A stretch of 64,000 nt of DNA, from positions 300,703 to 364,702 of IMG/VR virus record IMGVR_UViG_3300044712_001937. One strand, 5' to 3'. Below, piece by piece: positions 37,762 through 64,000 of the stretch (position 1 is the stretch's first letter; every line of letters begins with the position of its first letter). The notes beneath the pieces are model-generated. The model was given only the letters and a program-made list of their open reading frames with translations, searched no databases and had not been told where the DNA came from. A program made the translations under genes and the position numbers.

Positions 37762-38592
37762 TTATTTTAATCCTTGTATTAGGTTATCGCCATATTTTAT
37801 ACCATCATAACCATACTTCATTGCTTTTTCAGCAATTGCTTTAGCTTTTAAATTATTTGACGGTACATTATTTTGGCTACTTATTTTTTCAAAATTTATA
37901 TTTGGAAACCATATTTTTGCTAATATATCAACAGGTTGTTGACTTTTTTTTAAAACTAATCCTAATTCATGAGTATCTAATAAATTTTCAAAATCAATTT
38001 GATATCTATCAAATCCATCAATAGGTGCTAATGTAAAGAAATTACCTACTACAGAATTTTCAGAAATAGGTTCTTTTCTATAACCAATAATGGTTTTCTG
38101 ATTTTTCGTTGGATTTTCAATTTGAATATTTTTATTATCTTCTTCTAACGTTGCTAAAAATTCACTATCGCTATTACCCGAATTAATTTGATTATCTTGA
38201 TTAATTACATCTTGTGTTTCAACTTCTTCTAATGAACGAGATTGTTCATACTCAAAAATGTCTTGTATTTTATTCAACAATCTACAAGCATCTTTAAAAT
38301 TCATATCAAGTTTAACGGCTTTTAATGGTTTTTTATCATAAAGAGCACGAGCAAATCTATGATGACCATCACATATTTTATTATCTTCAGCAATCCAAAT
38401 AGGATTTTTATCATCTAAAGTACATTTACCAACTTCATCAGAAAATGTTATTCCTTGAGATGGTTGTAATTCATCCGGAGTTACTTCAATAAAATTATAA
38501 CCAATACCTTCATCATCTAATTTCTGCACAATAACATCATATGGCGCAGACATTTGTGGAAGAAAATATGGTTTATATCTTAAATCAATCAT
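37762..38592 (-). CDS. ParB/sulfiredoxin-like N-terminal domain protein with a second C-terminal domain
   Basis: ELQPSQ...PIWIAEDNKICDGHHRF; the C-terminal region ends KAMKYGYDGIKY; late motif (38610-38616). Confidence 0.7.
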   Translation of the reverse strand: MIDLRYKPYFLPQMSAPYDVIVQKLDDEGIGYNFIEVTPDELQPSQGITFSDEVGKCTLDDKNPIWIAEDNKICDGHHRFARALYDKKPLKAVKLDMNFKDACRLLNKIQDIFEYEQSRSLEEVETQDVINQDNQINSGNSDSEFLATLEEDNKNIQIENPTKNQKTIIGYRKEPISENSVVGNFFTLAPIDGFDRYQIDFENLLDTHELGLVLKKSQQPVDILAKIWFPNINFEKISSQNNVPSNNLKAKAIAEKAMKYGYDGIKYGDNLIQGLK

Positions 38593-38623
38593 CGTATTAT
38601 ATTTTCATATAAATACGATGATT

Positions 38624-39193
38624 TTATTTTTTTATTAAATTTTGAATTTCCTCATTAATGATAGATAAAATACTGTTTTTAGTCGATGAAATTAATTCCA
38701 ATTCTCCTTTATCAGCATGATAAATATTAAACACAATACCTTGAGGAATTAAAGGAATTGTTTGCATATAAGATTCAATATCCGAATCTCTATCATCATA
38801 AACATTAATTTCTTCTAATTCAGGATATTTTTTCAAATATTCAAGAATCCTATCACCCTTTGTAAGTTCAATAGTTTTCATATCAACTTTATCAACATTA
38901 ATCATGTTAATATCTAAAACTGCTTGAAGACTTGGGCGTAGTTTCTCTCGTCTGGATGTTAATATTATCACTAATGATTCATCATCTTTAATCGCATCAT
39001 TTAAAATACTAAATATTTTTGGAAATGGTTTAATATTAAATACTGTTAAATCTAAACTTTCAGGTCTTCCCCACCAACCAGAATATGTATAAATTTTATT
39101 ATAAAACTTTTCCCATATCAATTTTCCCTTTTCAAAATTTAAAGTATTAATTAATGTTCCATCAAAGTCGAATGCATATAATCTTTTAATCAT
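38624..39193 (-). CDS. HAD phosphatase of the Swiss Army Knife RNA-repair type (HAD_SAK-like)
   Basis: Motif I FDFDGTL, WWGRPESL insert, motif II ILTSR, motif III Lys (TKGD) and motif IV INVYDDR. Confidence 0.8.
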   Translation of the reverse strand: MIKRLYAFDFDGTLINTLNFEKGKLIWEKFYNKIYTYSGWWGRPESLDLTVFNIKPFPKIFSILNDAIKDDESLVIILTSRREKLRPSLQAVLDINMINVDKVDMKTIELTKGDRILEYLKKYPELEEINVYDDRDSDIESYMQTIPLIPQGIVFNIYHADKGELELISSTKNSILSIINEEIQNLIKK

Positions 39194-39909
39194 AATAATT
39201 CTTTTTTTAATTTTTCAACAATATTTTCATAATACAATATTCTTATTAATTTAATATTTTCATTAATAACAAAATTATTTTTTATATTATCTCTTATTTT
39301 CTGTAAATCAAATCTGTCTTTTGCTCTCTCTATCGAAATTCCTCCAAAATTTTTAGGTATTAAATGTTGTTCTCCATCATATTCAATTAGAATATTTTTT
39401 TTAATTAAATAAAAATCAAAAGATAATTCTTTAATATTATGGCATTTTACAAATCTTTTATTTATTTCATATTCTATATTATTTTCATCTAGCCAATTTT
39501 TTATTTTTAGTTCGCCATTTGACTTTTTACAAATAGGACATCCATAACCTTTTAAATGACTATGTGGCTGTTGATTAAACCATATTTTATGAATATTACA
39601 AAAAATTTCCATATTATGATTAGTGCCAGAATATGATAGTTTATTATATAAGTAAGAATTACCATGTATTTTCTTAAATCTAAAAAGCATAACATCGTAA
39701 TCAAGCCGTCTTAATTCATCAGAGCATTTCCTACAACCTCTTCCTATTAAATGTTTATAAGGCATTTGTTGAAAAATACCATGTTTATTACAAATTATAT
39801 TAATTTTAGTATGTGCATTAATGTAATTAACTAAATCATAATTATATTTATTATTATGAATATAATTTGCATTTTTTATAAATTTATCAGTTTTAGATTC
39901 ATAAATCAT
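39190..39909 (-). mobile_element. Putative homing endonuclease (DUF723-like Zn repeats plus Vsr/DUF559-like domain)
   Basis: IIC.KHGIFQQMPYKHL.GRGCRKC and C..H..WFNQQPHSHLKGYGCPIC repeats; SNGELKI...FDFYL...ILIEYDGEQH; overlaps both neighbours by 4 nt. Confidence 0.8.
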
Positions 39910-40416: not shown

Positions 40417-40827
40417 TTATGCAGGTTTTAATGCAGATGCAATTATTTCAGTCGGTTTACCTACAACCATAAATGGTCGTTTTAATGGTTTCCAATCTGT
40501 TAATTCATTCGACATTTTTGGTGTTGCTCCAATCATACGATTAACTGCAATAGTGATATGTGGTTTATTATTTTTACTTGGAAACCCCGATACACCAACT
40601 GCAATAACTTTATCATTTATCGCATAGTCATTAACCATTAATGGAATATTAATACCTTTATTTTTTTCAAACATTGGTTGAATTTCTGGGTCAATATCAC
40701 CTAAATTAATAGTCATATGATGTGCAATAATTTCAAAATTTTCTGGAATTATAGCTTTAAAATATTTAATTAACTTTTCTCTTGAATGTTCATCAAGAAC
40801 AACTGCAGTATAAAGCACTTTGCTCAT
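40417..40827 (-). CDS. 2H phosphoesterase (tRNA-ligase cyclic-phosphodiesterase-like)
   Basis: Two HxT motifs, HHMTI and PHITI, followed by the PKMSN tail typical of this family. Confidence 0.82.
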   Translation of the reverse strand: MSKVLYTAVVLDEHSREKLIKYFKAIIPENFEIIAHHMTINLGDIDPEIQPMFEKNKGINIPLMVNDYAINDKVIAVGVSGFPSKNNKPHITIAVNRMIGATPKMSNELTDWKPLKRPFMVVGKPTEIIASALKPA

Positions 40828-40888: not shown

Positions 40889-43132
40889 TTATCCAGTACT
40901 TTCAATAAAATTAATATCTTTTACAGATATTTTTTCAGGTAATTCATATGATTTACATCTTGCTCGATGTGTATAACAATAAAATCCATTCTTATCAGCA
41001 CCTAAACTAACTCCACTTGATTTTGGAGTCTTTTCCGTAAACTCTTTAGGCTTCATTAAACCATGAATATGTCCACCTTCATGATATGTCGAACCACCAG
41101 TAAGATACTTTGAAATTAATTCTTTCATTTCTTTACTAATAGATTTTGAACGCATTAAAGATGCTTTTACATCAGTATATGATTCATTTAAACTTTCTTT
41201 CTGATTTAATGAATTCAATAACATTTCTTCATTATTAGCAACTTTATCGCTATATATTTTAATTAATAAATTTTTTTGAGCATCACCTATTTCTTTACCT
41301 TTTAAACCAATCTGCATCAAATCACCACCATTAACAGCTAATTCATTAACAGTTTTAGGGTATTTACCCTGTAACAACTCATTAGCTGCAATTTTAATTC
41401 CACTTGGTAATATTTTACTTTGTAATGCTAATGGAGATATTAAATACATATTATGAGCTACAGCTCTTGCTTTAGCAGGGTTAGTTTCTTCATAATTTTG
41501 ATATGCTAATTCTAATGCTTTTATTTCTTTATATGAATCTAAATCACCTTTTAAATTATTTTTATAAAATTCAGAAGGATTTGATAACATTCTGGATAAT
41601 AAAAATATAAATTCACCCATTGAGACAATTTCTTCAAATGGACTTCTATCTATTGTTGATTGTTTTAAATCAAAGCCAAAAATATTATTAAATAATCCGG
41701 TATTCTTTAACAATTGAGCACCTAAACGTTTATTTCCTTTATGAATTATTTTATCAAATTCTGTCAATATTCTTTCAGGTGGAATTTCTTTAATTCTACT
41801 TGCATTATCCTGAATCATTTTCATTGTTAATGGTTCAATAGTAAATCCAAAACGTGATGCAAATTGTACAGCACGTAACATACGAAGTGGGTCATCAGAA
41901 AATGCTTCCGGATTAACTACACGAATAATTTTATCTTTCAAATCTTTTTGTCCACCATATGGGTCTACAATATTACCATTAATATCTTTAGCAATTGCAT
42001 TAATCGTAAAATCTCTACGTTTTAAATCAGCTTCAATAGGTAAATCATGGTCTGACTTTACTTCAAAACCTCTATGTCCACCTTCTCCAGTCGCACTTTC
42101 TGACCTTGGAATTGCAATATCTATATCATCAGTAGCACCTTTAGGTTTAAATTTTAAAATTCCGAATGATTTACCTACTGCATCAACTTTACCATATCGT
42201 GCTAAAATTAATTCAAGTTTATCCATAGGAATTCCAGTAATAAGAATATCTAAATCCTTACTTTCTTTACCTAAAAATTCATCTCGAACTGCACCACCTA
42301 CAGAAAATATTTTACCACCAAGTTGTTCTATTTCTTGTTTAAATGGTAAATCCTGTAAAGATATTAACTGCGCCTCATTCATTATTTCTTCTTTATATAA
42401 GTGAAAATCGTGTACTTCTTCGTTTGTTTTTTCTTTTATTATTTTAATTTGCCTTGGGTTAAATACGAAATAATCATCATAAAGTTTCGCTCCGTCATAT
42501 CCCATATCTTGAAGTTGACCTAAACCATATTTTTCATATTCATTCCAACCAGCCATTTTTTGTATTGATAAATATGCTGGAATTATTCTGCTTCTACCAG
42601 CAGCACCAGATTCACCACGCATTATTTTATCTTTATCAGCAGAAAACCAAATAATTGGTTGTGCTGCATTATTTAAACTAAATCTGGTAAAATCTTTATT
42701 TGTGCCATGATAAACTATTAAGGGTTTGCCTTGAGCATCTACAACTTTTGAATTTTTAAACCAATCATAAAACCTATTTGACAAATTTAATGATTCTTCT
42801 TTAATAATTTCAATTAAATTACATTCTTTTAAAGGTTTAATTTCAAAATTATTAATATCACCTTGATTACATGCTGAAGATGTGTTACCTAATCCACCTA
42901 ATCTACATTTTTTCTTTACATTAACAGTGGAACTACCATTCATTGAGGATAATATACGTTCAACAATCATATCAATGTCAGATTCTGTAATTTCATACTC
43001 ATCTTGAGTTGCATCACCATTAACATGATTATATTCTAAATCTTCATCGACTATATTATTGTTATATGTTGGAAAATCATCCTGACCAATAGTATTATCA
43101 GTTGAAAATTTTGAAGTTGAGTCTTCATTCAT
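40889..43132 (-). CDS. cca: Multidomain protein: ART-PolyVal-like domain, class II CCA-adding tRNA nucleotidyltransferase and an unknown C-terminal domain
   Basis: NTase motifs VGGAVRD..LG...KDLD, DLKRRDFTINA, DPYGGQKDL and FSDDPLRMLRAVQF, with the flexible loop present and no GRRF poly(A)-polymerase signature. The N-terminal NSKVVD..GKPLIVYHGT...GYDG...FNPRQIK occupies ~42440-42770. Confidence 0.88.
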   Translation of the reverse strand: MNEDSTSKFSTDNTIGQDDFPTYNNNIVDEDLEYNHVNGDATQDEYEITESDIDMIVERILSSMNGSSTVNVKKKCRLGGLGNTSSACNQGDINNFEIKPLKECNLIEIIKEESLNLSNRFYDWFKNSKVVDAQGKPLIVYHGTNKDFTRFSLNNAAQPIIWFSADKDKIMRGESGAAGRSRIIPAYLSIQKMAGWNEYEKYGLGQLQDMGYDGAKLYDDYFVFNPRQIKIIKEKTNEEVHDFHLYKEEIMNEAQLISLQDLPFKQEIEQLGGKIFSVGGAVRDEFLGKESKDLDILITGIPMDKLELILARYGKVDAVGKSFGILKFKPKGATDDIDIAIPRSESATGEGGHRGFEVKSDHDLPIEADLKRRDFTINAIAKDINGNIVDPYGGQKDLKDKIIRVVNPEAFSDDPLRMLRAVQFASRFGFTIEPLTMKMIQDNASRIKEIPPERILTEFDKIIHKGNKRLGAQLLKNTGLFNNIFGFDLKQSTIDRSPFEEIVSMGEFIFLLSRMLSNPSEFYKNNLKGDLDSYKEIKALELAYQNYEETNPAKARAVAHNMYLISPLALQSKILPSGIKIAANELLQGKYPKTVNELAVNGGDLMQIGLKGKEIGDAQKNLLIKIYSDKVANNEEMLLNSLNQKESLNESYTDVKASLMRSKSISKEMKELISKYLTGGSTYHEGGHIHGLMKPKEFTEKTPKSSGVSLGADKNGFYCYTHRARCKSYELPEKISVKDINFIESTG

Positions 43133-43172
43133 ATAAATTTACTTTTATATAAATACAATATTATAAATAAAA

Positions 43173-43191
43173 AAGCGCAATTAATGCGCTT
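43173..43191. terminator. Possible intrinsic terminator
   Basis: aagcgca-attaa-tgcgctt hairpin with an upstream A-run, overlapping the stop of the 43181-43870 gene. Confidence 0.5.
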
Positions 43192-43870: not shown

Positions 43871-43902
43871 TTTATAAAATATTATATTTTTTTATAAATA
43901 CT

Positions 43903-45267: not shown

Positions 45268-46038
45268 TTATTCATATTTTTTAAATACAAGAGTAATATA
45301 TTCCATTAAATTAGGAACAGTATCTAAATATTTCATTTCACTTGTATCATACCATCCATAATTAGTATTTTCTTCATTAAGTACTACATCTGTAGGTTCA
45401 CCTTTATATCTGCAAGCAAATACATGTTCAATACTATCAGATTTTCTTTGTATTGAGAATGATTTAATAAATTTACTTACGTCTAAACCAGTCTCTTCAC
45501 TAATTTCTCTCTTACATGCTTTTTCAGGAGTTTCACCTTTTTCAATACCACCACCAACTAAACCCCACTTACCGGGCATCCACATTTCTTTTATATTAGC
45601 TCGTTTTAATAATAAAATTTTATTATCATTATTTACAATTACAGCAACTGCATTTTTTATTAAATCATTAGTTGATTCATTTATAGCATTTGCATTATAA
45701 GCATTAACATCAGAATTAGTATTTACTGTCATATCACGAGTCACATTTTTATTTACTTTTACTGCATTTCTATCAGTATTTAATGTAGTTTCAATAAAAT
45801 TTCTCATTAAATCACCTCCAGCTAATGCATATTGTATTTTACTATCAGTTTGCGGATTAAAATAATCAAAAAAATTTTTTAACCTTTTTAATACTTGATA
45901 TGTAACACTACCATTTTTTAACATAAATTTAGCACGTTTAACACCTTCACCACTTGGGTTTGATACCAATGTAGCCTGAATAAATTTAATAACATCAGAT
46001 GGTAATTGATATTGTTTATCGTATAATTGTGAATTCAT
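45268..46038 (-). CDS. Nudix hydrolase with an N-terminal unknown domain
   Basis: Nudix box GGIEKGETPEKACKREISEETGL. Confidence 0.9.
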   Translation of the reverse strand: MNSQLYDKQYQLPSDVIKFIQATLVSNPSGEGVKRAKFMLKNGSVTYQVLKRLKNFFDYFNPQTDSKIQYALAGGDLMRNFIETTLNTDRNAVKVNKNVTRDMTVNTNSDVNAYNANAINESTNDLIKNAVAVIVNNDNKILLLKRANIKEMWMPGKWGLVGGGIEKGETPEKACKREISEETGLDVSKFIKSFSIQRKSDSIEHVFACRYKGEPTDVVLNEENTNYGWYDTSEMKYLDTVPNLMEYITLVFKKYE

Positions 46039-56605: not shown

Positions 56606-59600
56606 TTATATTGCAGTTATTGATAATGTACCACCATCAGCTACAGTTAATCTATATTTAGTACCGTTTGGAGAATACATAATAATACCACCACTAGTAC
56701 CTGTACAATGTACAACTAATTTAGGTACAATAACACTTTCAGTATAACAATTAGATGGAATTACAATACTATTACCACCTAACATTACTGAACAAGTATT
56801 TCCTGAACATAATGTATTTGAAACACCACCAATAATTACAGAATTATTACTTATAACAGTATTACAACAACCCATACTAATAGAATATATACCACATGCA
56901 ATACCACCTGCCATTACTACCGAACATTGACCACATGCAATACCACCTCCAACAAGCGACATTACAAATCCCTTATCAACTAATGAACGGTCTGTATAGC
57001 TTGCGCAATAATTAGCAGCATATTGAACACCTTTAAAATTTGCATTACCTGACGATATTGTAATACCACTTCTTGAGCATATTTTTGTACCAGTAGAATC
57101 TAAAGTAATTTTTTCAATATCACTACCATTACCACTTACATTTTGATGAAATAAATTTAAACAACTTTGTTGTACAATTACACTACTTTGTAATGCATTA
57201 ATTGCTGAACTTTGAGTTAAAGCTAAAATATTGCGAGTAATGCACATTTCCACATTATTTGTTGCATCAGTCCAATTATTAACTGAAAAACAATTATTAT
57301 CTACACAAATATTAGTATTATTTGTTAATATACCCCCTAATACAACATTATTATTATTAATATTTAATCCATTTGTTGCTCCTGTTATTCCACTACCACC
57401 AACAAGTGTCATTACAAATCCCTTATCAACTAATGAACGGTCTGTATAGTTTGTTGAATAATCACCACAATATTGAATACCTGAAAAATCAACAGCACTA
57501 CCACAAATCATTAATGTACTACTACCAACATTTAATTGAGTTTTATTTCCGATACTATTATCTGCAGTTATTTCCACACCACTTGCACATGTCCAAATAA
57601 AATTATTATAACAAATATTATTACTACAAACACTATTCATACACGCTTCTGCTGGGGTAATGTATAATTGAGTAAATCTTGTTGGGGAAGATTTTTGTGT
57701 TATATCAGTAGTACCAGCATATTGTTCAATATAACTTGAGTAATCAGAAAGTGTACCAATTTTTACACATGCTGGTGTGTAAAGAATTCCAATATTCGTA
57801 CCACCGCTAATTGTAATGTTTTTTGTATTTAATCCAATATTAGTATTACCTGTTAATGTACCCCCTAATACAACATTTTGTCCAACTTTACTCAATCCAT
57901 TTGTTGCTCCTGTTATTGCAGAATTTAATACTGTACTTCCTGCAATTGCCTTAACTGTACAATCTGTCGAATTCCATGTTAATATGTTATCACTTAAACT
58001 TCCTACTGATGGTGTGCATCTTAATTTTAAATATGGTAATATTATACATTCATTAGGAGTTGTCATATCACCCATTATAAGTGATGTACTTCCAGTACCA
58101 ATATAAAGTTTACCTGAACCTGTTTCACTTAATCCTGCATTAGAACCTAAAAAAATGTTTGTAGAACCAGTTGAAGCACAACCTGCAAACATACCTATAG
58201 CTACGCTATTATTACCATATTTGTTACAAAATAAAACACTTGTACCAATACCGATATTACTAATTCCATTAACATTATTAAATAATGCTCCATTACCAAA
58301 ACCTATATTAGACCTACCTGTAGTATTACCGCTTAACGAACAATTACCGATTGCAATATTATTACTAACTAAATTTCTATACAATGCTTTATCACCAATT
58401 GCAATATTTGATGAACCTGTTAAATTTAAATATCCTGAATTATTACCGATTCCAATATTTGTATTACCTGAAGTATTACAATATAAAGCACAATAACCAT
58501 AAGCTAAATTATAACTTCCAGAAATATTTCGATATAATGTAGTCACACCATTAGCAACATTATAACAACCTGAAATATTATTTAACATAGTATTATATCC
58601 TATTGCAACATTAGAACGACCTGAAATATTATTATTCATAGTAGATGTACCTAATGAAATATTAGCAAATCCACAAATATTTTTAGATAAACTTCTATAG
58701 CCAATTGCAATATTATTATTACAAGTATTTGCACTTAATGCACTACAACCAATGGCAATATTATTTAAACCCGTTAAATTTGAATATAGCGAATTTAAAC
58801 CTATTGCAATATTATTAACACCTGTACTATTATTAATTAATGCATTTTGACCTATTCTAACATTACTTAAACTATTTCTTCCAGCATCAAAAAATGTTAC
58901 TCCTGAAATCTGATATCCACAAGTTGTATTTAATTTAGCACCACTACAAATATTTAAACTGTAATTTCCAGTTAAACTCGTATTTCCTGTTAATGCTCCA
59001 CCCAATACAACACTACTACCAACTTTACTTAAACCATTATTTAAACATATATTTTCAGCAATACCTGATGAATTAAAACCTGCAAGGGAATTATTAGTGC
59101 CAATATGACCACTATCACTCCAATTTAAATTTGTAAGATTAGCATGATTATTTGAACTAACCCCAACTAAACTTATAGTAGACATTTTACTACCTGTAAT
59201 ATAAGTTATACCATTAGTCGGAATTGTTACTTTACCATAATTAGTATTTCCATTTGCAGTAAAATATGTAATACGTGCATAAAGAACAAATTCCGCACTT
59301 CTATTACTTAAATCACCTAAATACAACCCACGAGTATCTTCAGCTTGAGCCGTAGCTAATGTTGTATATGTAGCTTGTGGTTGTATAAAAACCATTCGGT
59401 ATCTTTGAGAATTAACATCAGATGTTGTAGGAATTAAAAGTTGATATACATTATAATATCTATTATTAACACCTACAGTCATAGCACCAGTAGTAGGAGT
59501 ATTTACATATATAAATTGATTTGTTCCGGGAGCTGAAAATGGACGTGCTGCACTATATGTATAAACACTTGAGTTTCCACTTACATGCATTAAAGTATAA

Positions 59601-60283
59601 CCATTAACTTTATCTAAATAAGGAATTGTTGTAGATAAATCTTCATCTTTAATAACTGCAACACCAAAACTTGGTGATACAGCATAATCAGTAGCTGTAT
59701 TAGCTGTATACGAATATGCTTGTCCTCCTGATTTTAAATATGTTCCAACATTAGTATGAAAATCTTCATGTGAAGTATAATCCATTAATTCATGAGTCTC
59801 ACGTATAGCAAATGTTCTACTTGCAGTAGCACCACTATAATATAACGCAGCTATTTGTATATCATAAAAATTCCAAGGACTTTGACTCCATATAATATCA
59901 TTTCCATTAGATGAATATAAATACCAATTACCAATCGTTGCAGTATGCCCAGATGATGTCCAAGGAGAATTTAATGATTTTTTTATTCCTCTCCAATAAT
60001 ACGATAAATCACCTGTTAATGTAACAGTTCTATTACTATAATTATATGAAATATCTATATTTGAGCCATTAACAAAGCCTGTAGGGTTTTTATTATCTAA
60101 ATATACTGATGTTCTATATATTTGACCATTCGAATTAATATCAATTCCTCCAGAAGTACTTCCAGAAACATTGTTAATATTTAATGTACCACATATATTA
60201 GTAGTTCCAGATAAATTTAATATATCATCAATATTTTGAATATATCTATTATTCGATAAATTTCTTTTAGTATTAAATCCCAT
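56606..60283 (-). CDS. Tail-fibre/adhesin-like protein with YadA-head-like N-x-A/G-I-G repeats
   Basis: Array of 14-17-aa NxAIGxxxLxxNxxG repeats, repeated ATNGLSKVG..VVLGG.LTGNT modules and many Cys; late motif (60320-60326). Confidence 0.8.
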   Translation of the reverse strand: MGFNTKRNLSNNRYIQNIDDILNLSGTTNICGTLNINNVSGSTSGGIDINSNGQIYRTSVYLDNKNPTGFVNGSNIDISYNYSNRTVTLTGDLSYYWRGIKKSLNSPWTSSGHTATIGNWYLYSSNGNDIIWSQSPWNFYDIQIAALYYSGATASRTFAIRETHELMDYTSHEDFHTNVGTYLKSGGQAYSYTANTATDYAVSPSFGVAVIKDEDLSTTIPYLDKVNGYTLMHVSGNSSVYTYSAARPFSAPGTNQFIYVNTPTTGAMTVGVNNRYYNVYQLLIPTTSDVNSQRYRMVFIQPQATYTTLATAQAEDTRGLYLGDLSNRSAEFVLYARITYFTANGNTNYGKVTIPTNGITYITGSKMSTISLVGVSSNNHANLTNLNWSDSGHIGTNNSLAGFNSSGIAENICLNNGLSKVGSSVVLGGALTGNTSLTGNYSLNICSGAKLNTTCGYQISGVTFFDAGRNSLSNVRIGQNALINNSTGVNNIAIGLNSLYSNLTGLNNIAIGCSALSANTCNNNIAIGYRSLSKNICGFANISLGTSTMNNNISGRSNVAIGYNTMLNNISGCYNVANGVTTLYRNISGSYNLAYGYCALYCNTSGNTNIGIGNNSGYLNLTGSSNIAIGDKALYRNLVSNNIAIGNCSLSGNTTGRSNIGFGNGALFNNVNGISNIGIGTSVLFCNKYGNNSVAIGMFAGCASTGSTNIFLGSNAGLSETGSGKLYIGTGSTSLIMGDMTTPNECIILPYLKLRCTPSVGSLSDNILTWNSTDCTVKAIAGSTVLNSAITGATNGLSKVGQNVVLGGTLTGNTNIGLNTKNITISGGTNIGILYTPACVKIGTLSDYSSYIEQYAGTTDITQKSSPTRFTQLYITPAEACMNSVCSNNICYNNFIWTCASGVEITADNSIGNKTQLNVGSSTLMICGSAVDFSGIQYCGDYSTNYTDRSLVDKGFVMTLVGGSGITGATNGLNINNNNVVLGGILTNNTNICVDNNCFSVNNWTDATNNVEMCITRNILALTQSSAINALQSSVIVQQSCLNLFHQNVSGNGSDIEKITLDSTGTKICSRSGITISSGNANFKGVQYAANYCASYTDRSLVDKGFVMSLVGGGIACGQCSVVMAGGIACGIYSISMGCCNTVISNNSVIIGGVSNTLCSGNTCSVMLGGNSIVIPSNCYTESVIVPKLVVHCTGTSGGIIMYSPNGTKYRLTVADGGTLSITAI
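56960..57449. repeat. Internal 40-bp perfect direct repeat (56960-56999 = 57410-57449)
   Basis: cattacaaatcccttatcaactaatgaacggtctgtatag occurs twice, 450 bp apart, encoding YTDRSLVDKGFVM. Confidence 0.9.
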
Positions 60284-60372
60284 TTTTTCTAATTAAAAAT
60301 TTAAGTTTATTATTTTAAATAAATACTATTAAACTAATACTTAATTCACAATTAGTAAAAAATAAAATAAAA

Positions 60373-60396
60373 AACCCATCAGTTAACTGATGGGTT
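60373..60396. terminator. Perfect 24-bp palindrome, probably a terminator
   Basis: aacccatcagttaactgatgggtt flanked by A-runs, downstream of the GT9-like gene. Confidence 0.7.
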
Positions 60397-60418
60397 AAAA
60401 AAAATAACAAGATTAAAT

Positions 60419-61330
60419 TTATTTCTGACTATTAACGGCATCTATAATTTTATTAATATCAAATACATTTACAGTATCATATGGAAACTGTTGAATTTGT
60501 CCATCTATTGAGAAATCTTCAAGATAAGAAAATTTAGTCAACTCATTAACATAATTAGCACTTGGTAGTACGTTAATATGTTCAGGATAACCAAATATTT
60601 CAGGTTTATTTCCAATCCAAACAACTGTTGATTGTAAACCTAACGCTGCTGCTGTATGTTGTGCAAAACTATCAATAAATAATCTTTTTGTACTTAATGG
60701 AAATACAGCATATAATTCACGTAATGGTAATGTTAATGGTTCAACATTTTGTAATGTTGGTTGTTCTGGTGATTTTATATGTAAAACACGATATGATTTA
60801 GCAAAATAATTTGCTAATTTTTGTGCAATTTCAATTGGCATATCTCTAAACCATGATTTTTTAGAGTATTGGGTATTAGGAGAGCCACCATGAGTTTGTA
60901 ATAACATAATTGGTCTACCATCAGGTTTTATTTTATCTTTTGCAATTTCAAGTTCTCTTGGGTTAATATATAATTCAGGAGTACAACCATCAAAAGGAAT
61001 ATTATACATATCACACCAAGATTGAGTTAAATGTTTACGTTTTAAAATATGGTCTTCAGTATGATATACTTCTTGTCTAAAAATTATTGTATCTTCTTTA
61101 ATATAATCTGTAAAAAAGTATTGCATCTGATTAAATGTAAAGAATCTAAATACGTTTGGGTTATAAAAGGCAGGAGCATCCCATGATGTAACCCATATTA
61201 TTTTTCTATCCGGATACGCTTTTTTTATTGCTCTAATAACTGCTGTTGCTTGAATTTGCTTACCATGTCCACCTTCTGAGCTAAATATCACGTACTTATC
61301 ATCATCTTTAATTCTTGTATCTTTATTCAT
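60419..61330 (-). CDS. GT9-like (heptosyltransferase-like GT-B) glycosyltransferase
   Basis: EGGHGKQIQATAVIRAIKKAYPDRKI and LFIDSFAQHTAAALG..STVVW; likely start MNKDTRIK at 61330. Confidence 0.75.
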   Translation of the reverse strand: MNKDTRIKDDDKYVIFSSEGGHGKQIQATAVIRAIKKAYPDRKIIWVTSWDAPAFYNPNVFRFFTFNQMQYFFTDYIKEDTIIFRQEVYHTEDHILKRKHLTQSWCDMYNIPFDGCTPELYINPRELEIAKDKIKPDGRPIMLLQTHGGSPNTQYSKKSWFRDMPIEIAQKLANYFAKSYRVLHIKSPEQPTLQNVEPLTLPLRELYAVFPLSTKRLFIDSFAQHTAAALGLQSTVVWIGNKPEIFGYPEHINVLPSANYVNELTKFSYLEDFSIDGQIQQFPYDTVNVFDINKIIDAVNSQK

Positions 61331-61346
61331 ATTTTTAATATTTATA

Positions 61347-62249
61347 TTAATTATTTTTATATTTCCACTTAAATCCACCTGAAGTTTTACATTTACCATT
61401 TAAACATTTATAAATGCTATTTGATTTATATTTATTTAATTCAATTGCTTTATTAATAGAATCATATTCTTCAATCAAATTATCATTAATATCAAATTTA
61501 ACAATAGATTTATATTTTATATTCTTATACTTTTTAATTTCTTTAGGTAATTTATTTTCATAAAACCACATATAACCACCTGCTTGATTATATCCATCTT
61601 TTCTTAAACATTTATTAATTAATTTACATTTAACACCAGTTTTATTTTCAGCATCACCTTGACCATTAAATTTATTTAAAAAAATACCATCTAAAGAATA
61701 TTGTAATATTAATATATTTCTTTTTGCTGCTTTTCTAAACTTAATATTTTCTTTTGATTGTAAATTTGTAAACCAATAACAATTGGCTGAACTTTTATTA
61801 ATTTTCTGATTTAACGCAAGTGAAATTTTAGAAATACTAACATGCACATCTTCACTTGCTTCAGTTAATGAATTGTATTTTTTTTTAAAATCACCATTTT
61901 CATCATAACGATATATTTCAATAGTTTCTCTACCAGATAAACCACCACCATTAGTTAAATTACTTAATTTAATACCCTCATTTTTATATTTTTTAATGTA
62001 ATATATTTCCAATCTTTCATGTTCATACATTTTAAATTTTTCATTATATACATATTCACACTCATCAATAATATTTAAAATTGGTCTTTTATTATTTAAT
62101 AAAATATCATCAATAATCAAATCTTTATTTAAATTATACTTATCACTAATATGTTCATTTAGTCTTTTCTTTGGATTATTAGTATAACCCACATAAAATA
62201 TTTGTTTATTTAATGGATTTATTAAAACGTATATAAATACCTTTTTCAT
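61347..62249 (-). mobile_element. GIY-YIG homing endonuclease with three NUMOD1-like DNA-binding repeats
   Basis: FIYVLINP...FYVGYT..PKKRLNEH...E..YI...N core; repeats I..(Y/F)D/S.(N/D)G/D.......S...A; GGYMW and GGFKWKY; own late motif (62280-62286). Confidence 0.85.
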
Positions 62250-62319
62250 TATTGTATTATAAATTTTTATACTTTTTTATAAATACGGTGATTATCATAA
62301 AAATCTTGAATTACTACAA

Positions 62320-62352
62320 AAAAAATGGGAGTTTTTTAAACCCCCATTTTTT
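62320..62352. terminator. Intrinsic terminator
   Basis: aaaaaatggg...cccatttttt stem downstream of the second fibre gene. Confidence 0.65.
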
Positions 62353-62368
62353 AATTGTTTTATTTTGA

Positions 62369-64000
62369 TTAGTTAATAAATGCTAATGTATACCAAGCAT
62401 TCAATCCTAAATTATAAACTAATTCCATTGCACCATAATCTGTGTTTATTAATGCTGTTGAGAATCCATCAATATTTCTACCATTACCACTAATAGTAAT
62501 ATTATATGTTAAAGCTTGACCACTCACATCTTTAAATTTAAATGCTTCACCTGTTATTGGTGTTGCAGGTAATGTAATTGTCACTGCAGCAGTTGGACTA
62601 TTAATTAACAATACATATGAACTACCTGTATTTAATATAGCATTTGTAGTTACAGCAGATGTTGAATAAAAATTATTTTTATCTCCTAATGCTGCACCTG
62701 ATATTGTTTTAATTAATTTATCTGTAGAATTCCAAACTAATATAGAATCTGATATTGAGCCTACTTGTGGAGTACATCTTAATTTTAAATAAGGTAATAT
62801 TATACATTCATTAGGAGTTGTCATATCACCCATTATAAGTGATGTACTTCCACTACCGATATAAAGCTTACCTGAACCAGTTTCATTATAACCTGCACAA
62901 TTACCAATTGCAATATTAGTACTACCTGTAGAATTATATAACGACCTATAACCAACACCAATATTATTATCTAATTTACTATTACTTAATGCACCCATAC
63001 CAACAGCAATATTTCTATTACCTATACAATTAAATTGTAATGAAAATTGACCTACTGCAACATTACCCATTCCACTAATATTTGCTGAAAGTGCACCATT
63101 TCCTATTGCAGCATTTTGATATCCAATAGTATTTGAACACATTGTTTGATAACCTATTGCAGTATTTCTACAACCCGTTGTATTTCTTAAAAGAGTTTGA
63201 AATCCAACACTCACATTATTACAACCAGTAGTATTACCACTTAATGAACAATTACCGATAGCTATATTATTACTAACTAAATTACTATATAATGCTTTAT
63301 CACCAATTGCAATATTTGATGAACCTGTTAAATTTAAATATCCTGAATTATTACCGATTCCAATATTTGTGTTTCCTGAAGTATTACATCTTAACGAACA
63401 AATCCCAATAGCTATATTATTATTACCAGATAAATTACATTGTAGTGAATATGTACCAACACCTACATTATAATTTCCAGATACATTTTGACACATTGAT
63501 AAATAACCAACACCAGTATTAAAACATCCATTAACATTATTTTTTAATACTGATGTACCTATTGCAACATTAGCTAATCCAACAGAATTTGAATATAACG
63601 TACAACCACCTAAACCAACATTATTATTTCCAGATACATTGTTACTTAATGAACATATTCCTAAACCAACATTATTATTTCCAGATACATTGTTACTTAA
63701 TGAACATATTCCTATTCCAATATTTTTACAACCTGTTGTATTTCCACTTAATGAATATTGACCAATCGCAATATTACAAAGTCCAGTACTATTATTAATT
63801 AAAGCATTTTGACCTATTCTAACATTACTTAAACTATTTCTTGTTGCATCAAAAAATGTTACTCCTGAAATCTGATATCCACAAGTTGTATTTAATTTAG
63901 CACCACTACAAATATTTAAACTGTAATTTCCAGTTAAACTCGTATTTCCTGTTAATGCTCCACCCAATACAACACTACTACCAACTTTACTTAAACCATT
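62369..64000 (-). CDS. Second tail-fibre/adhesin-like paralog (start lies beyond the window end)
   Basis: The frame is open to position 64000 (NGLSKVGSSVVLGG...). It has 17-aa NxAIG repeats and a C-terminal TITLPA...GEAFKFKD...ITI.GNG..IDG.......YG.MELVY T4-like fibre module. Confidence 0.82.
   Translation of the reverse strand, partial: NGLSKVGSSVVLGGALTGNTSLTGNYSLNICSGAKLNTTCGYQISGVTFFDATRNSLSNVRIGQNALINNSTGLCNIAIGQYSLSGNTTGCKNIGIGICSLSNNVSGNNNVGLGICSLSNNVSGNNNVGLGGCTLYSNSVGLANVAIGTSVLKNNVNGCFNTGVGYLSMCQNVSGNYNVGVGTYSLQCNLSGNNNIAIGICSLRCNTSGNTNIGIGNNSGYLNLTGSSNIAIGDKALYSNLVSNNIAIGNCSLSGNTTGCNNVSVGFQTLLRNTTGCRNTAIGYQTMCSNTIGYQNAAIGNGALSANISGMGNVAVGQFSLQFNCIGNRNIAVGMGALSNSKLDNNIGVGYRSLYNSTGSTNIAIGNCAGYNETGSGKLYIGSGSTSLIMGDMTTPNECIILPYLKLRCTPQVGSISDSILVWNSTDKLIKTISGAALGDKNNFYSTSAVTTNAILNTGSSYVLLINSPTAAVTITLPATPITGEAFKFKDVSGQALTYNITISGNGRNIDGFSTALINTDYGAMELVYNLGLNAWYTLAFIN
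63609..63710. repeat. Perfect tandem duplication of a 51-bp (17-aa) unit
   Basis: ICSLSNNVSGNNNVGLG is encoded twice with identical DNA. Confidence 0.9.

Follow-up and report, generated by a model that had tools for sequence, protein, structure and literature searches.

A CCA-centred polyvalent protein with candidate protease junction sites in an uncultured T4-like jumbo phage

Polyproteins that are released into their working parts by a protease are a hallmark of RNA viruses and, to our knowledge, are hardly documented in tailed phages. The polyvalent proteins of Iyer, Burroughs, Anand, de Souza and Aravind (2017) were predicted to be co-delivered with the DNA and to be processed into units, by way of embedded metallopeptidases, and their ADP-ribosyltransferases (ARTs) are defined by an H-Y-D active site with His in strand 1, Tyr in strand 2 and Asp in strand 5 (PMC5512222). 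In T4 the protease gp21 cleaves behind L/I-X-E and trims the ART Alt, which is packaged in the head, at either end, and proteases of this type are assembled as zymogens into the prohead core and act there (PMC9026906); the T4 internal proteins consist of a conserved cleavable leader and a variable cargo (PMC9026906, PMC8442874). Here we describe a protein of 747 amino acids (aa) that contains an ART-type domain and a CCA-adding enzyme and is encoded on the minus strand at positions 40889-43132 of a 64-kb stretch of viral DNA, called the window below, which comprises bases 300703-364702 of the 364,702-bp IMG/VR phage record IMGVR_UViG_3300044712_001937.

The phage record, rated as complete, carries a direct terminal repeat of ~5.1 kb; its G+C content is 26%, and it encodes T4-type head genes, i.e. 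a Gp23-family capsid protein (249 bits), portal, large terminase and sheath; the nearest cultured capsid protein, from Flavobacterium phage immuto, is 34% identical. A host among the Bacteroidota is suggested by the low G+C content together with the nearest capsid relatives. Portal-terminase packaging genes and at least two unrelated effector domains in one polypeptide are marks of polyvalent proteins, and both are found here. On sequence evidence the 747-aa protein is a short representative of a cassette-like polyvalent protein family that is confined to an uncultured clade of T4-like jumbo phages of ~320-370 kb. The reading that we favour, with a probability of about one half, is that the prohead protease processes this protein and that the pieces are delivered into the next host.

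Domains and junction sites of the 747-aa protein

The open reading frame (ORF) ends at a TAA stop and encodes a product of 84 kDa. Its existence and the order of its domains, proposed in an earlier note on this DNA, are upheld by the translation, Pfam and NCBIfam, and all peptides quoted there are found in the translation. The protein begins with an acidic segment (aa 1-54, 42971-43132; this and the domains that follow are on the minus strand) that has 16 Asp and Glu residues versus 1 Lys or Arg, is predicted to be disordered, and aligns with interior stretches of longer relatives. What had been described as an acidic leader is acidic in this part, but aa 55-103 (42824-42970) form a conserved module that is found in 193 of 1.84 billion representative protein clusters, nearly always as part of longer proteins (up to 2,332 aa), and at 80 loci in IMG/VR, in ORFs of up to 2,693 aa. 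This module, the Cys module, has two invariant or near-invariant Cys residues (alignment A1) and the consensus core KC.LGG.G.TS.ACNQGD, is predicted to be a beta-hairpin with a long loop, and belongs to no known family. When aa 1-262 were modelled with AlphaFold on the basis of 75 sequences, aa 1-60 came out disordered, the hairpin module (aa 65-100) had a predicted local distance difference test score (pLDDT) of ~90, and aa 238-262 formed a low-confidence linker. The Cys module ends in LKE101-103, the first of three consecutive sites of the type phi-x-E, phi being a hydrophobic residue, that lie between the module and the ART domain (LKE, LIE and IKE, aa 101-112, 42797-42832).

An assignment of aa 113-240 (42413-42796) as an ART domain of PARP-like fold is supported by sequence profiles as well as by modelling; its activity would depend on nicotinamide adenine dinucleotide (NAD). 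Pfam ART-PolyVal (PF18760, Tox-ART-HYD2 clade) matches aa 132-193 with 52 bits at a gathering cut-off of 31.2, and a second piece of the match lies on profile positions 100-137, the two pieces totalling 57.6 bits. The core of the domain (aa 126-235) has an AlphaFold pLDDT of 88-97, and in a Foldseek search against the PDB all 48 matches listed are catalytic domains of PARP4, tankyrase or PARP2, with probabilities up to 0.98 and E-values from 5e-3. The ART fold that had been suggested for the N-terminal domain, at ~42440-42770, is therefore borne out by structure prediction, and its coordinates agree with ours. In an alignment of 25 ART-PolyVal segments H142 in strand 1 is conserved and the acidic D219/D220 opens strand 5, while strand 2 has W162 in place of Tyr, a substitution that sets this subfamily apart and is conserved among its members. 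Relatives of the ART domain occur in fusions with GNATs and with MuF head proteins, the latter (P0134, P0136) in distant relatives only.

A low-confidence linker (aa 241-253, 42374-42412) that ends in MNE251-253 leads to the class II CCA-adding enzyme (aa 254-650, 41183-42373). Here Pfam detects the PolyA_pol head (PF01743, aa 276-404, 82 bits) and the PolyA_pol_RNAbd neck (PF12627, aa 429-485, 59 bits), the class II motifs GGAVRD, DLD, RRD and DDPLR can be read in the translation, and the NCBIfam model NF009814 (CCA tRNA nucleotidyltransferase) aligns end to end, aa 262-646 covering model positions 10-394 of 396, with a score of 168 bits that is below the equivalog cut-off of 290. Membership of the CCA family is clear from these matches, the possible specificities (CCA-adding, CA- or A-adding, poly(A)) being indistinguishable at this level. 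The stand-alone CCA enzymes of jumbo phages are 24-40% identical, in the CCA part only. The last domain is an alpha+beta domain of 97 aa (aa 651-747, 40892-41182), preceded by LNE648-650, that folds confidently (AlphaFold pLDDT 84) behind 13 disordered residues; its sole match is a 62-aa PHROG family of no known function, and in the relatives it is always C-terminal. Fold searches with this domain and with the Cys module gave no usable match (Foldseek best E 1.3, VIA-align best Z 3.2, nothing in the ESM Atlas).

The arrangement of domains varies widely among relatives. A word search with the CCA part retrieved 3,569 of them, and the best 120, which were inspected and come mostly from large phage contigs, show variable fusions to ART-PolyVal, GNAT, 2H/Acb1-like, tRNA_lig_CPD, HAD_SAK_1 and NUDIX domains. 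The junctions between domains were compared in a set of about 300 relatives. The motif [LIVM]xE is present in 167 of 180 distinct junction windows (93%) versus 29% of random windows from the same proteins; the hydrophobic position (P3) is Leu, Ile, Met and Val in 96, 57, 31 and 11 of the junction windows, respectively, and the middle position (P2) is Asn in 96. The over-representation of [LIVM]NE is 2.6-fold in the family versus 1.4-fold in the whole proteome. In the 747-aa protein the junction sites are LKE101-103, LIE106-108, IKE110-112, MNE251-253 and LNE648-650, and they sit in linkers of low pLDDT. The IKE and LNE linker sites of the earlier note are thus present, and the middle one is Met-x-Glu, not Ile-x-Glu.

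The motif is kept at each kind of junction. In 102 of ~117 unique sequences with an internal CCA domain a phi-N-E site is found 11-12 aa before this domain, and the site is absent in proteins that start with the CCA domain, except for one (P0037) that starts with MNE. LNE opens the C-terminal domain in most relatives, irrespective of the preceding sequence; distinct copies of the Cys module end in [LIVM]-x-E in 116 out of 120 cases, after which unrelated sequence follows; and members of the phage clade have phi-x-E a few residues before the ART domain. The same is seen with two proteins that are encoded by separate genes in this phage and are fused in relatives, namely a 136-aa protein (40417-40827, minus strand) with two HxT motifs, 2H-phosphoesterase-like by eye and without a Pfam match, and a HAD_SAK_1 phosphatase (38624-39193, minus strand) that resembles the phosphatase part of polynucleotide kinase. 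Their fused copies are preceded, at a distance of 3-10 residues, by phi-x-E, and some of these copies retain their own Met downstream of it. The idea that the motif is a relic of the start codon of fused genes was rejected on the basis of codon usage and of this retained internal Met: Leu codons at P3 follow the bulk usage (TTA 52%, TTG 13%), and MNE is uncommon as an N-terminus in this phage.

Proposed processing and delivery, and competing explanations

A protease of the T4 gp21 type, which the earlier note had brought in from T4, is present in the same phage: a 239-aa ORF (genome positions 82278-82997, minus strand) matches Peptidase_S77 (PF03420, 60.6 bits) and has readable catalytic His (HPD) and Ser (SSRG) motifs, and an S77 protease was also found in 5 out of 5 related complete genomes tested. 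In the capsid protein, for which six complete genomes show 79-85% identity, phi-x-E occurs six times among the first 60 residues and is absent from the following 250. The last of these sites, (I/L)NE followed by Ser, lies 17 residues before the conserved core and is kept in all six genomes, at the position where removal of a T4-like propeptide would be expected. Pfam searches of the 747-aa protein, five long relatives and a sample of 39 module-bearing proteins turned up no embedded peptidase, and the pattern of sites points to the head maturation protease as the release enzyme, an alternative to an embedded peptidase. As a separate observation, small ORFs in related genomes (L096, L097, L098) contain a stretch that is 36-49% identical to the capsid propeptide (W.K.GLLEGL.GN), and one of them lies directly downstream of the CCA polyprotein gene of its genome; a propeptide-like paralogue was not found in the genome studied here.

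Starting from the domains, the conservation of the junction motif, the presence of the protease gene and the type of promoter, we infer the following course of events. The 747-aa protein would be made from a late-type promoter and taken into the prohead, where the gp21-type protease would cut after E103 and/or E112, E253 and E650 and give rise to pieces of 11 kDa (aa 1-103), ~17 kDa (aa 104/113-253), 44 kDa (aa 254-650) and 11 kDa (aa 651-747). The freed enzymes would then enter the next host cell together with the DNA, where the CCA enzyme would complete or repair the 3' ends of tRNAs, the 49 encoded by the phage among them, and the ART domain would modify a host target. Judged from the family alignments, cleavage at the junction sites is plausible. 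We also put forward, tentatively, that the protein belongs to a general cargo-cassette system in which enzymes placed behind the Cys module and separated by phi-N-E are loaded into the head as a single polyprotein and released one by one by the protease; its domains may include the CCA enzyme, ART, GNAT, 2H/Acb1-like, HAD and kinase-like domains.

There are a number of points that weigh against processing and delivery. The 747-aa protein does not have the N-terminal region of 550-850 aa found in the long relatives, which begin with MTY.EF and so resemble the T4 targeting sequence MKTYQEFIAE; because this region is missing, the protein has no recognisable targeting signal. The Cys module was considered as a general head-targeting tag, and this was rejected, as the genome has a single copy. 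Within the protein itself (L/I)xE is not enriched (10 observed versus 10.4 +/- 2.7 in shuffles); it is the positions of the sites, kept across relatives, that give a signal above chance, unlike the site count in one protein. The related sequences in the junction counts are not statistically independent, and part of the preference for Asn-Glu behind a hydrophobic residue could reflect a signal for the start of a helix. The neighbouring genes are RNA-repair, NUDIX and replication genes and not head proteins, and a link to virion genes or a MuF/portal fusion, another mark of polyvalent proteins, was not found at the CCA polyprotein locus. Finally, the clade has no cultured member. The suggestion that the linkers are protease sites gains from the conservation of phi-x-E at every junction across the family and from the (I/L)NE end of the capsid propeptide.

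The long relatives deserve a description of their own. They start with MTY.EF and carry a phrog_4301 domain of no known function (L014:3709-5988, L071:3415-5988, alignment A4), and visual inspection of the consensus shows two kinase-like regions (Gly-rich loop, VxK, DxG). Their start codons are preceded by GTATTTAT, the upstream motif discussed below. A search of the present genome with their N-terminal domain found no counterpart.

The promoter of the gene also bears on the question. A promoter-like motif, GTATTTATA (43148-43156, minus strand), starts 24 nucleotides (nt) before the ATG, and the upstream gene ends in an intrinsic-terminator-like hairpin with a T-run (43173-43191, minus strand), so that the CCA polyprotein gene opens its own transcription unit. 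The late motif of T4 type that the earlier note had placed at 43150 does not hold: the T4 late promoter TATAAATA at 43148-43155 is on the plus strand, which is wrong for this gene, and its 46 matches in the window are not above chance (36.8 expected, 8 of 100 shuffles reach 46), whereas the gene strand reads GTATTTATA, which is late-type. Sigma-70-like sites near the gene were likewise not above chance. The commonest upstream motif of the phage, detected by k-mer enrichment, is GTATTTAT, with the extended form GTATTTAT(A/T)..AAAA. It is 15-fold enriched before genes and is found upstream of 70 of the 411 ORFs, its distance from the start codon peaking sharply at 22-26 nt. Genes that have it in front of them include those for terminase, portal and sheath and the one that precedes the capsid protein gene, and the motif can therefore be regarded as a late-type signal. 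However, the helicase gene and small genes scattered among the tRNA clusters have it in front of them as well, which is a further point against the delivery of the 747-aa protein, since a virion protein is not implied by this promoter class and the argument that a late gene must be packaged does not follow. A second motif, TTTCGTATATA, lies in front of 28 ORFs, the majority of them at 165-290 kb; none of them is structural, and they include genes for a rIIB-like protein, nicotinamide phosphoribosyltransferase (NAMPT), a glycosyltransferase and proteins of unknown function. The picture of a packaged, processed and injected polyprotein, as drawn in the earlier note, is supported in part: the junction motif, the S77 protease and the capsid (I/L)NE strengthen the idea of cleavage sites.

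The competitor that survives best, though we consider it unlikely, is that the 747-aa protein remains uncleaved in the cytoplasm as a multi-domain enzyme that adds CA or CCA to phage tRNAs and repairs their ends together with the 136-aa and HAD proteins, the fusion serving for co-localisation, as in Swiss-army-knife RNA repair proteins. The genome contains 49 tRNA genes and one transfer-messenger RNA (tmRNA) gene, located at 104-148 kb plus single genes at 10.5, 164 and 219 kb. Every tRNA gene ends with the discriminator and a C that is followed by non-CA bases (encoded CCA after the discriminator in 0 out of 49), i.e. C74 seems to be encoded and C75-A76 not. Thus the CCA enzyme has a cytoplasmic job whether it is packaged or not; judged from the tRNA genes this role looks obvious, and it has to be kept in mind as a caution against the delivery reading. 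The tRNA clusters are among the same promoter class as the CCA polyprotein gene, the HAD_SAK_1 and 2H-like genes are in its operon, RNA ligases of the Rnl1 and Rnl2 types are encoded elsewhere in the genome, and domain fusion and fission among relatives is a classic sign of a functional link. On the other hand, an uncleaved enzyme leaves unexplained why a Glu-specific phi-x-E is found at every junction in many contexts, and why the motif is lost when the CCA domain is N-terminal (one MNE start apart). Moreover ART and GNAT are, as far as we know, no components of RNA repair in the systems described.

A narrower alternative, which is independent of packaging and which we find rather more doubtful, concerns the target of the ART domain: it could work alongside the CCA enzyme and the phosphoesterase on nucleic-acid ends, e.g. 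on the phosphate end of a tRNA or RNA, rather than on a host protein as T4 Alt does. Within the family nearly all fusion partners of the domain are enzymes that act on RNA ends (CCA, 2H, tRNA_lig_CPD, HAD), and the subfamily-specific, conserved change from Tyr to Trp in strand 2 would also fit. However, its fold and sequence place it in the PARP-like H-Y-[ED] clade and not in the KptA/Tpt1 H-H-h clade of RNA repair (PMC9503650), and the close relatives are fused to MuF and GNATs, protein targets having been predicted by Iyer et al. (PMC5512222). A third explanation, that the polyprotein is an expression strategy in which the prohead protease or another Glu-specific protease cuts in the cytoplasm and the products act late and unpackaged, would account for the conserved junction motif and draws on a preprint in which T4 gp21 triggers a cytoplasmic enzyme of the cyclic-oligonucleotide-based antiphage signalling system (CBASS) that has LPE in its activation loop, cleavage of the loop being the proposed mechanism and implying gp21 activity outside the head (PMC12991175), but it is improbable in our view, given that gp21-type proteases act as prohead-core zymogens (PMC9026906), that Pfam gives no second protease candidate in the family, and that the same outcome is reached by separate genes in this very phage.

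Neighbouring genes and other features of the phage

Judged by terminator positions, the transcription unit of the CCA polyprotein gene extends from 43156 to ~37363 and includes the genes of the 136-aa protein, a homing endonuclease and HAD_SAK_1. The homing endonuclease (39190-39909, minus strand; PHROG HNH/homing) lies between the 136-aa and 169-aa genes on one side and the HAD gene on the other, and further homing endonuclease genes adjoin the prohead protease gene (GIY-YIG-like, by eye) and occur near the sheath gene. Examples of the promoter-like motif in the window are at 38607-38615, 43148-43156 and 43892-43900. A 276-aa ORF (37762-38592, minus strand) has its own GTATTTAT, a ParB-like DGHHR near the N-terminus and a C-terminus, KYGYDGIKYG, reminiscent of the GYDG in the ART domain; neither Pfam nor the ART profile gives a match, and phrog_2859, of unknown function, is the sole family to match the ORF. 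A NUDIX hydrolase is encoded at 45268-46038 (minus strand) with an unexplained N-terminal extension of 125 aa, and the NUDIX part gives an additional hit to a PHROG family with a portal annotation (profile positions 511-632 of 794, E = 1e-16).

Outside the window, the phage encodes a classical polyvalent protein in a 1020-aa ORF (genome positions 165512-168574, plus strand, i.e. L009:5512-8574). It contains an HExxH motif (HELQH) and a C-terminal ART-PolyVal domain, directly before which LNE857-859 is found; an ART-like stretch in the middle of the protein (by eye HGT ... WTT ... GYDG) has a weak score (domain E 0.23), and GTATTTAT lies 13 nt before the start codon. The domain of the adjacent 212-aa ORF recurs, up to three times, in long CCA polyproteins of relatives.

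Positions 58911-64000 of the window are the direct terminal repeat, identical to the first ~5,090 bases of the record, and the genes at the ends are thus duplicated. Over the 411 ORFs the stop codons are TAA (346), TGA (45) and TAG (20), and the standard code suffices; one tRNA has a CUA (amber-reading) anticodon, although TAG is used as a stop. Part of the stretch was found in six DNA runs, none of which is recorded as RNA: four are rhizosphere metagenomes that each hold at least 46% of the sampled words of the stretch, and the remaining two hold ~5%.

Comparison with described systems

If the favoured reading is true, jumbo phages pre-load enzymes for tRNA maturation and repair and for modification of the host, to be used in the first minutes of infection. 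The family would then provide a natural design rule for bringing foreign enzymes into T4-like heads, and it would define two new domains. If the cassette generalisation also holds, the 747-aa protein would supply the first virion-delivered tRNA CCA-adding enzyme, and the system would be a counterpart to the polyproteins of RNA viruses and to engineered delivery with the T4 targeting sequence. If the protein is uncleaved, what remains is an uncommon fusion of ART and CCA enzyme, in which NAD chemistry is tied to the maintenance of tRNA ends. What are separate genes in one phage are fused domains in its relatives, and the proposed cut positions are exact and testable.

It is instructive to set these features beside the systems that come closest. 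The ejection and inner-body proteins of phiKZ and SPN3US are similar in that many proteins inside the head undergo cleavage behind Glu by a diverged homologue of gp21 and pass into the host; there, processing is mostly propeptide removal, the proteins are non-enzymatic or RNA polymerase subunits, the lineage is unrelated and the P3 preference is different. The stand-alone CCA enzymes of the 121Q/Rak2 group and of Brevundimonas phages share the class II head and neck and the setting in a phage with many tRNAs but, unlike the 747-aa protein, they have a single function or are fused to an HD phosphohydrolase only.

Swiss-army-knife (SAK) RNA repair proteins, a name that is also used in Pfam HAD_SAK_1, were reportedly described by Burroughs and Aravind in 2016. 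They are said to combine a CCA-type nucleotidyltransferase, a HAD phosphatase and 2H/CPD in one protein or operon, which is the likeness to the present locus. A difference is that RNA ligase is not part of the CCA polyprotein operon, and we know of no SAK protein described with ART, GNAT or protease-site linkers.

The likeness to T4 Alt and the internal proteins IPI-III lies in an ART with a late-type promoter in a phage that has a gp21-type protease. Alt, however, belongs to the R-S-E clade and is trimmed at its ends only, whereas the sites described here lie between whole enzymes; also, the 10-aa targeting sequence of the T4 proteins is absent from the 747-aa protein, the similar MTY.EF being found only in the long relatives.

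The closest comparison is with the polyvalent proteins themselves (PMC5512222). In both, several unrelated effectors are combined in one polypeptide, and the components overlap, with an ART of the same H-Y-D clade, GNAT, 2H and kinase-like domains. The differences are in the core, the release and the modules. The core is a CCA enzyme here, while the term CCA is absent from PMC5512222 and pol-beta nucleotidyltransferases are mentioned there only for conjugative elements; the family has no embedded metallopeptidase, and its junction sites fit a prohead protease acting in trans; and it has a Cys module and a C-terminal domain of its own. What is new with respect to the literature is thus a CCA-centred polyvalent protein that has protease-type sites at its junctions instead of an embedded peptidase, together with two modules that have not been described before.

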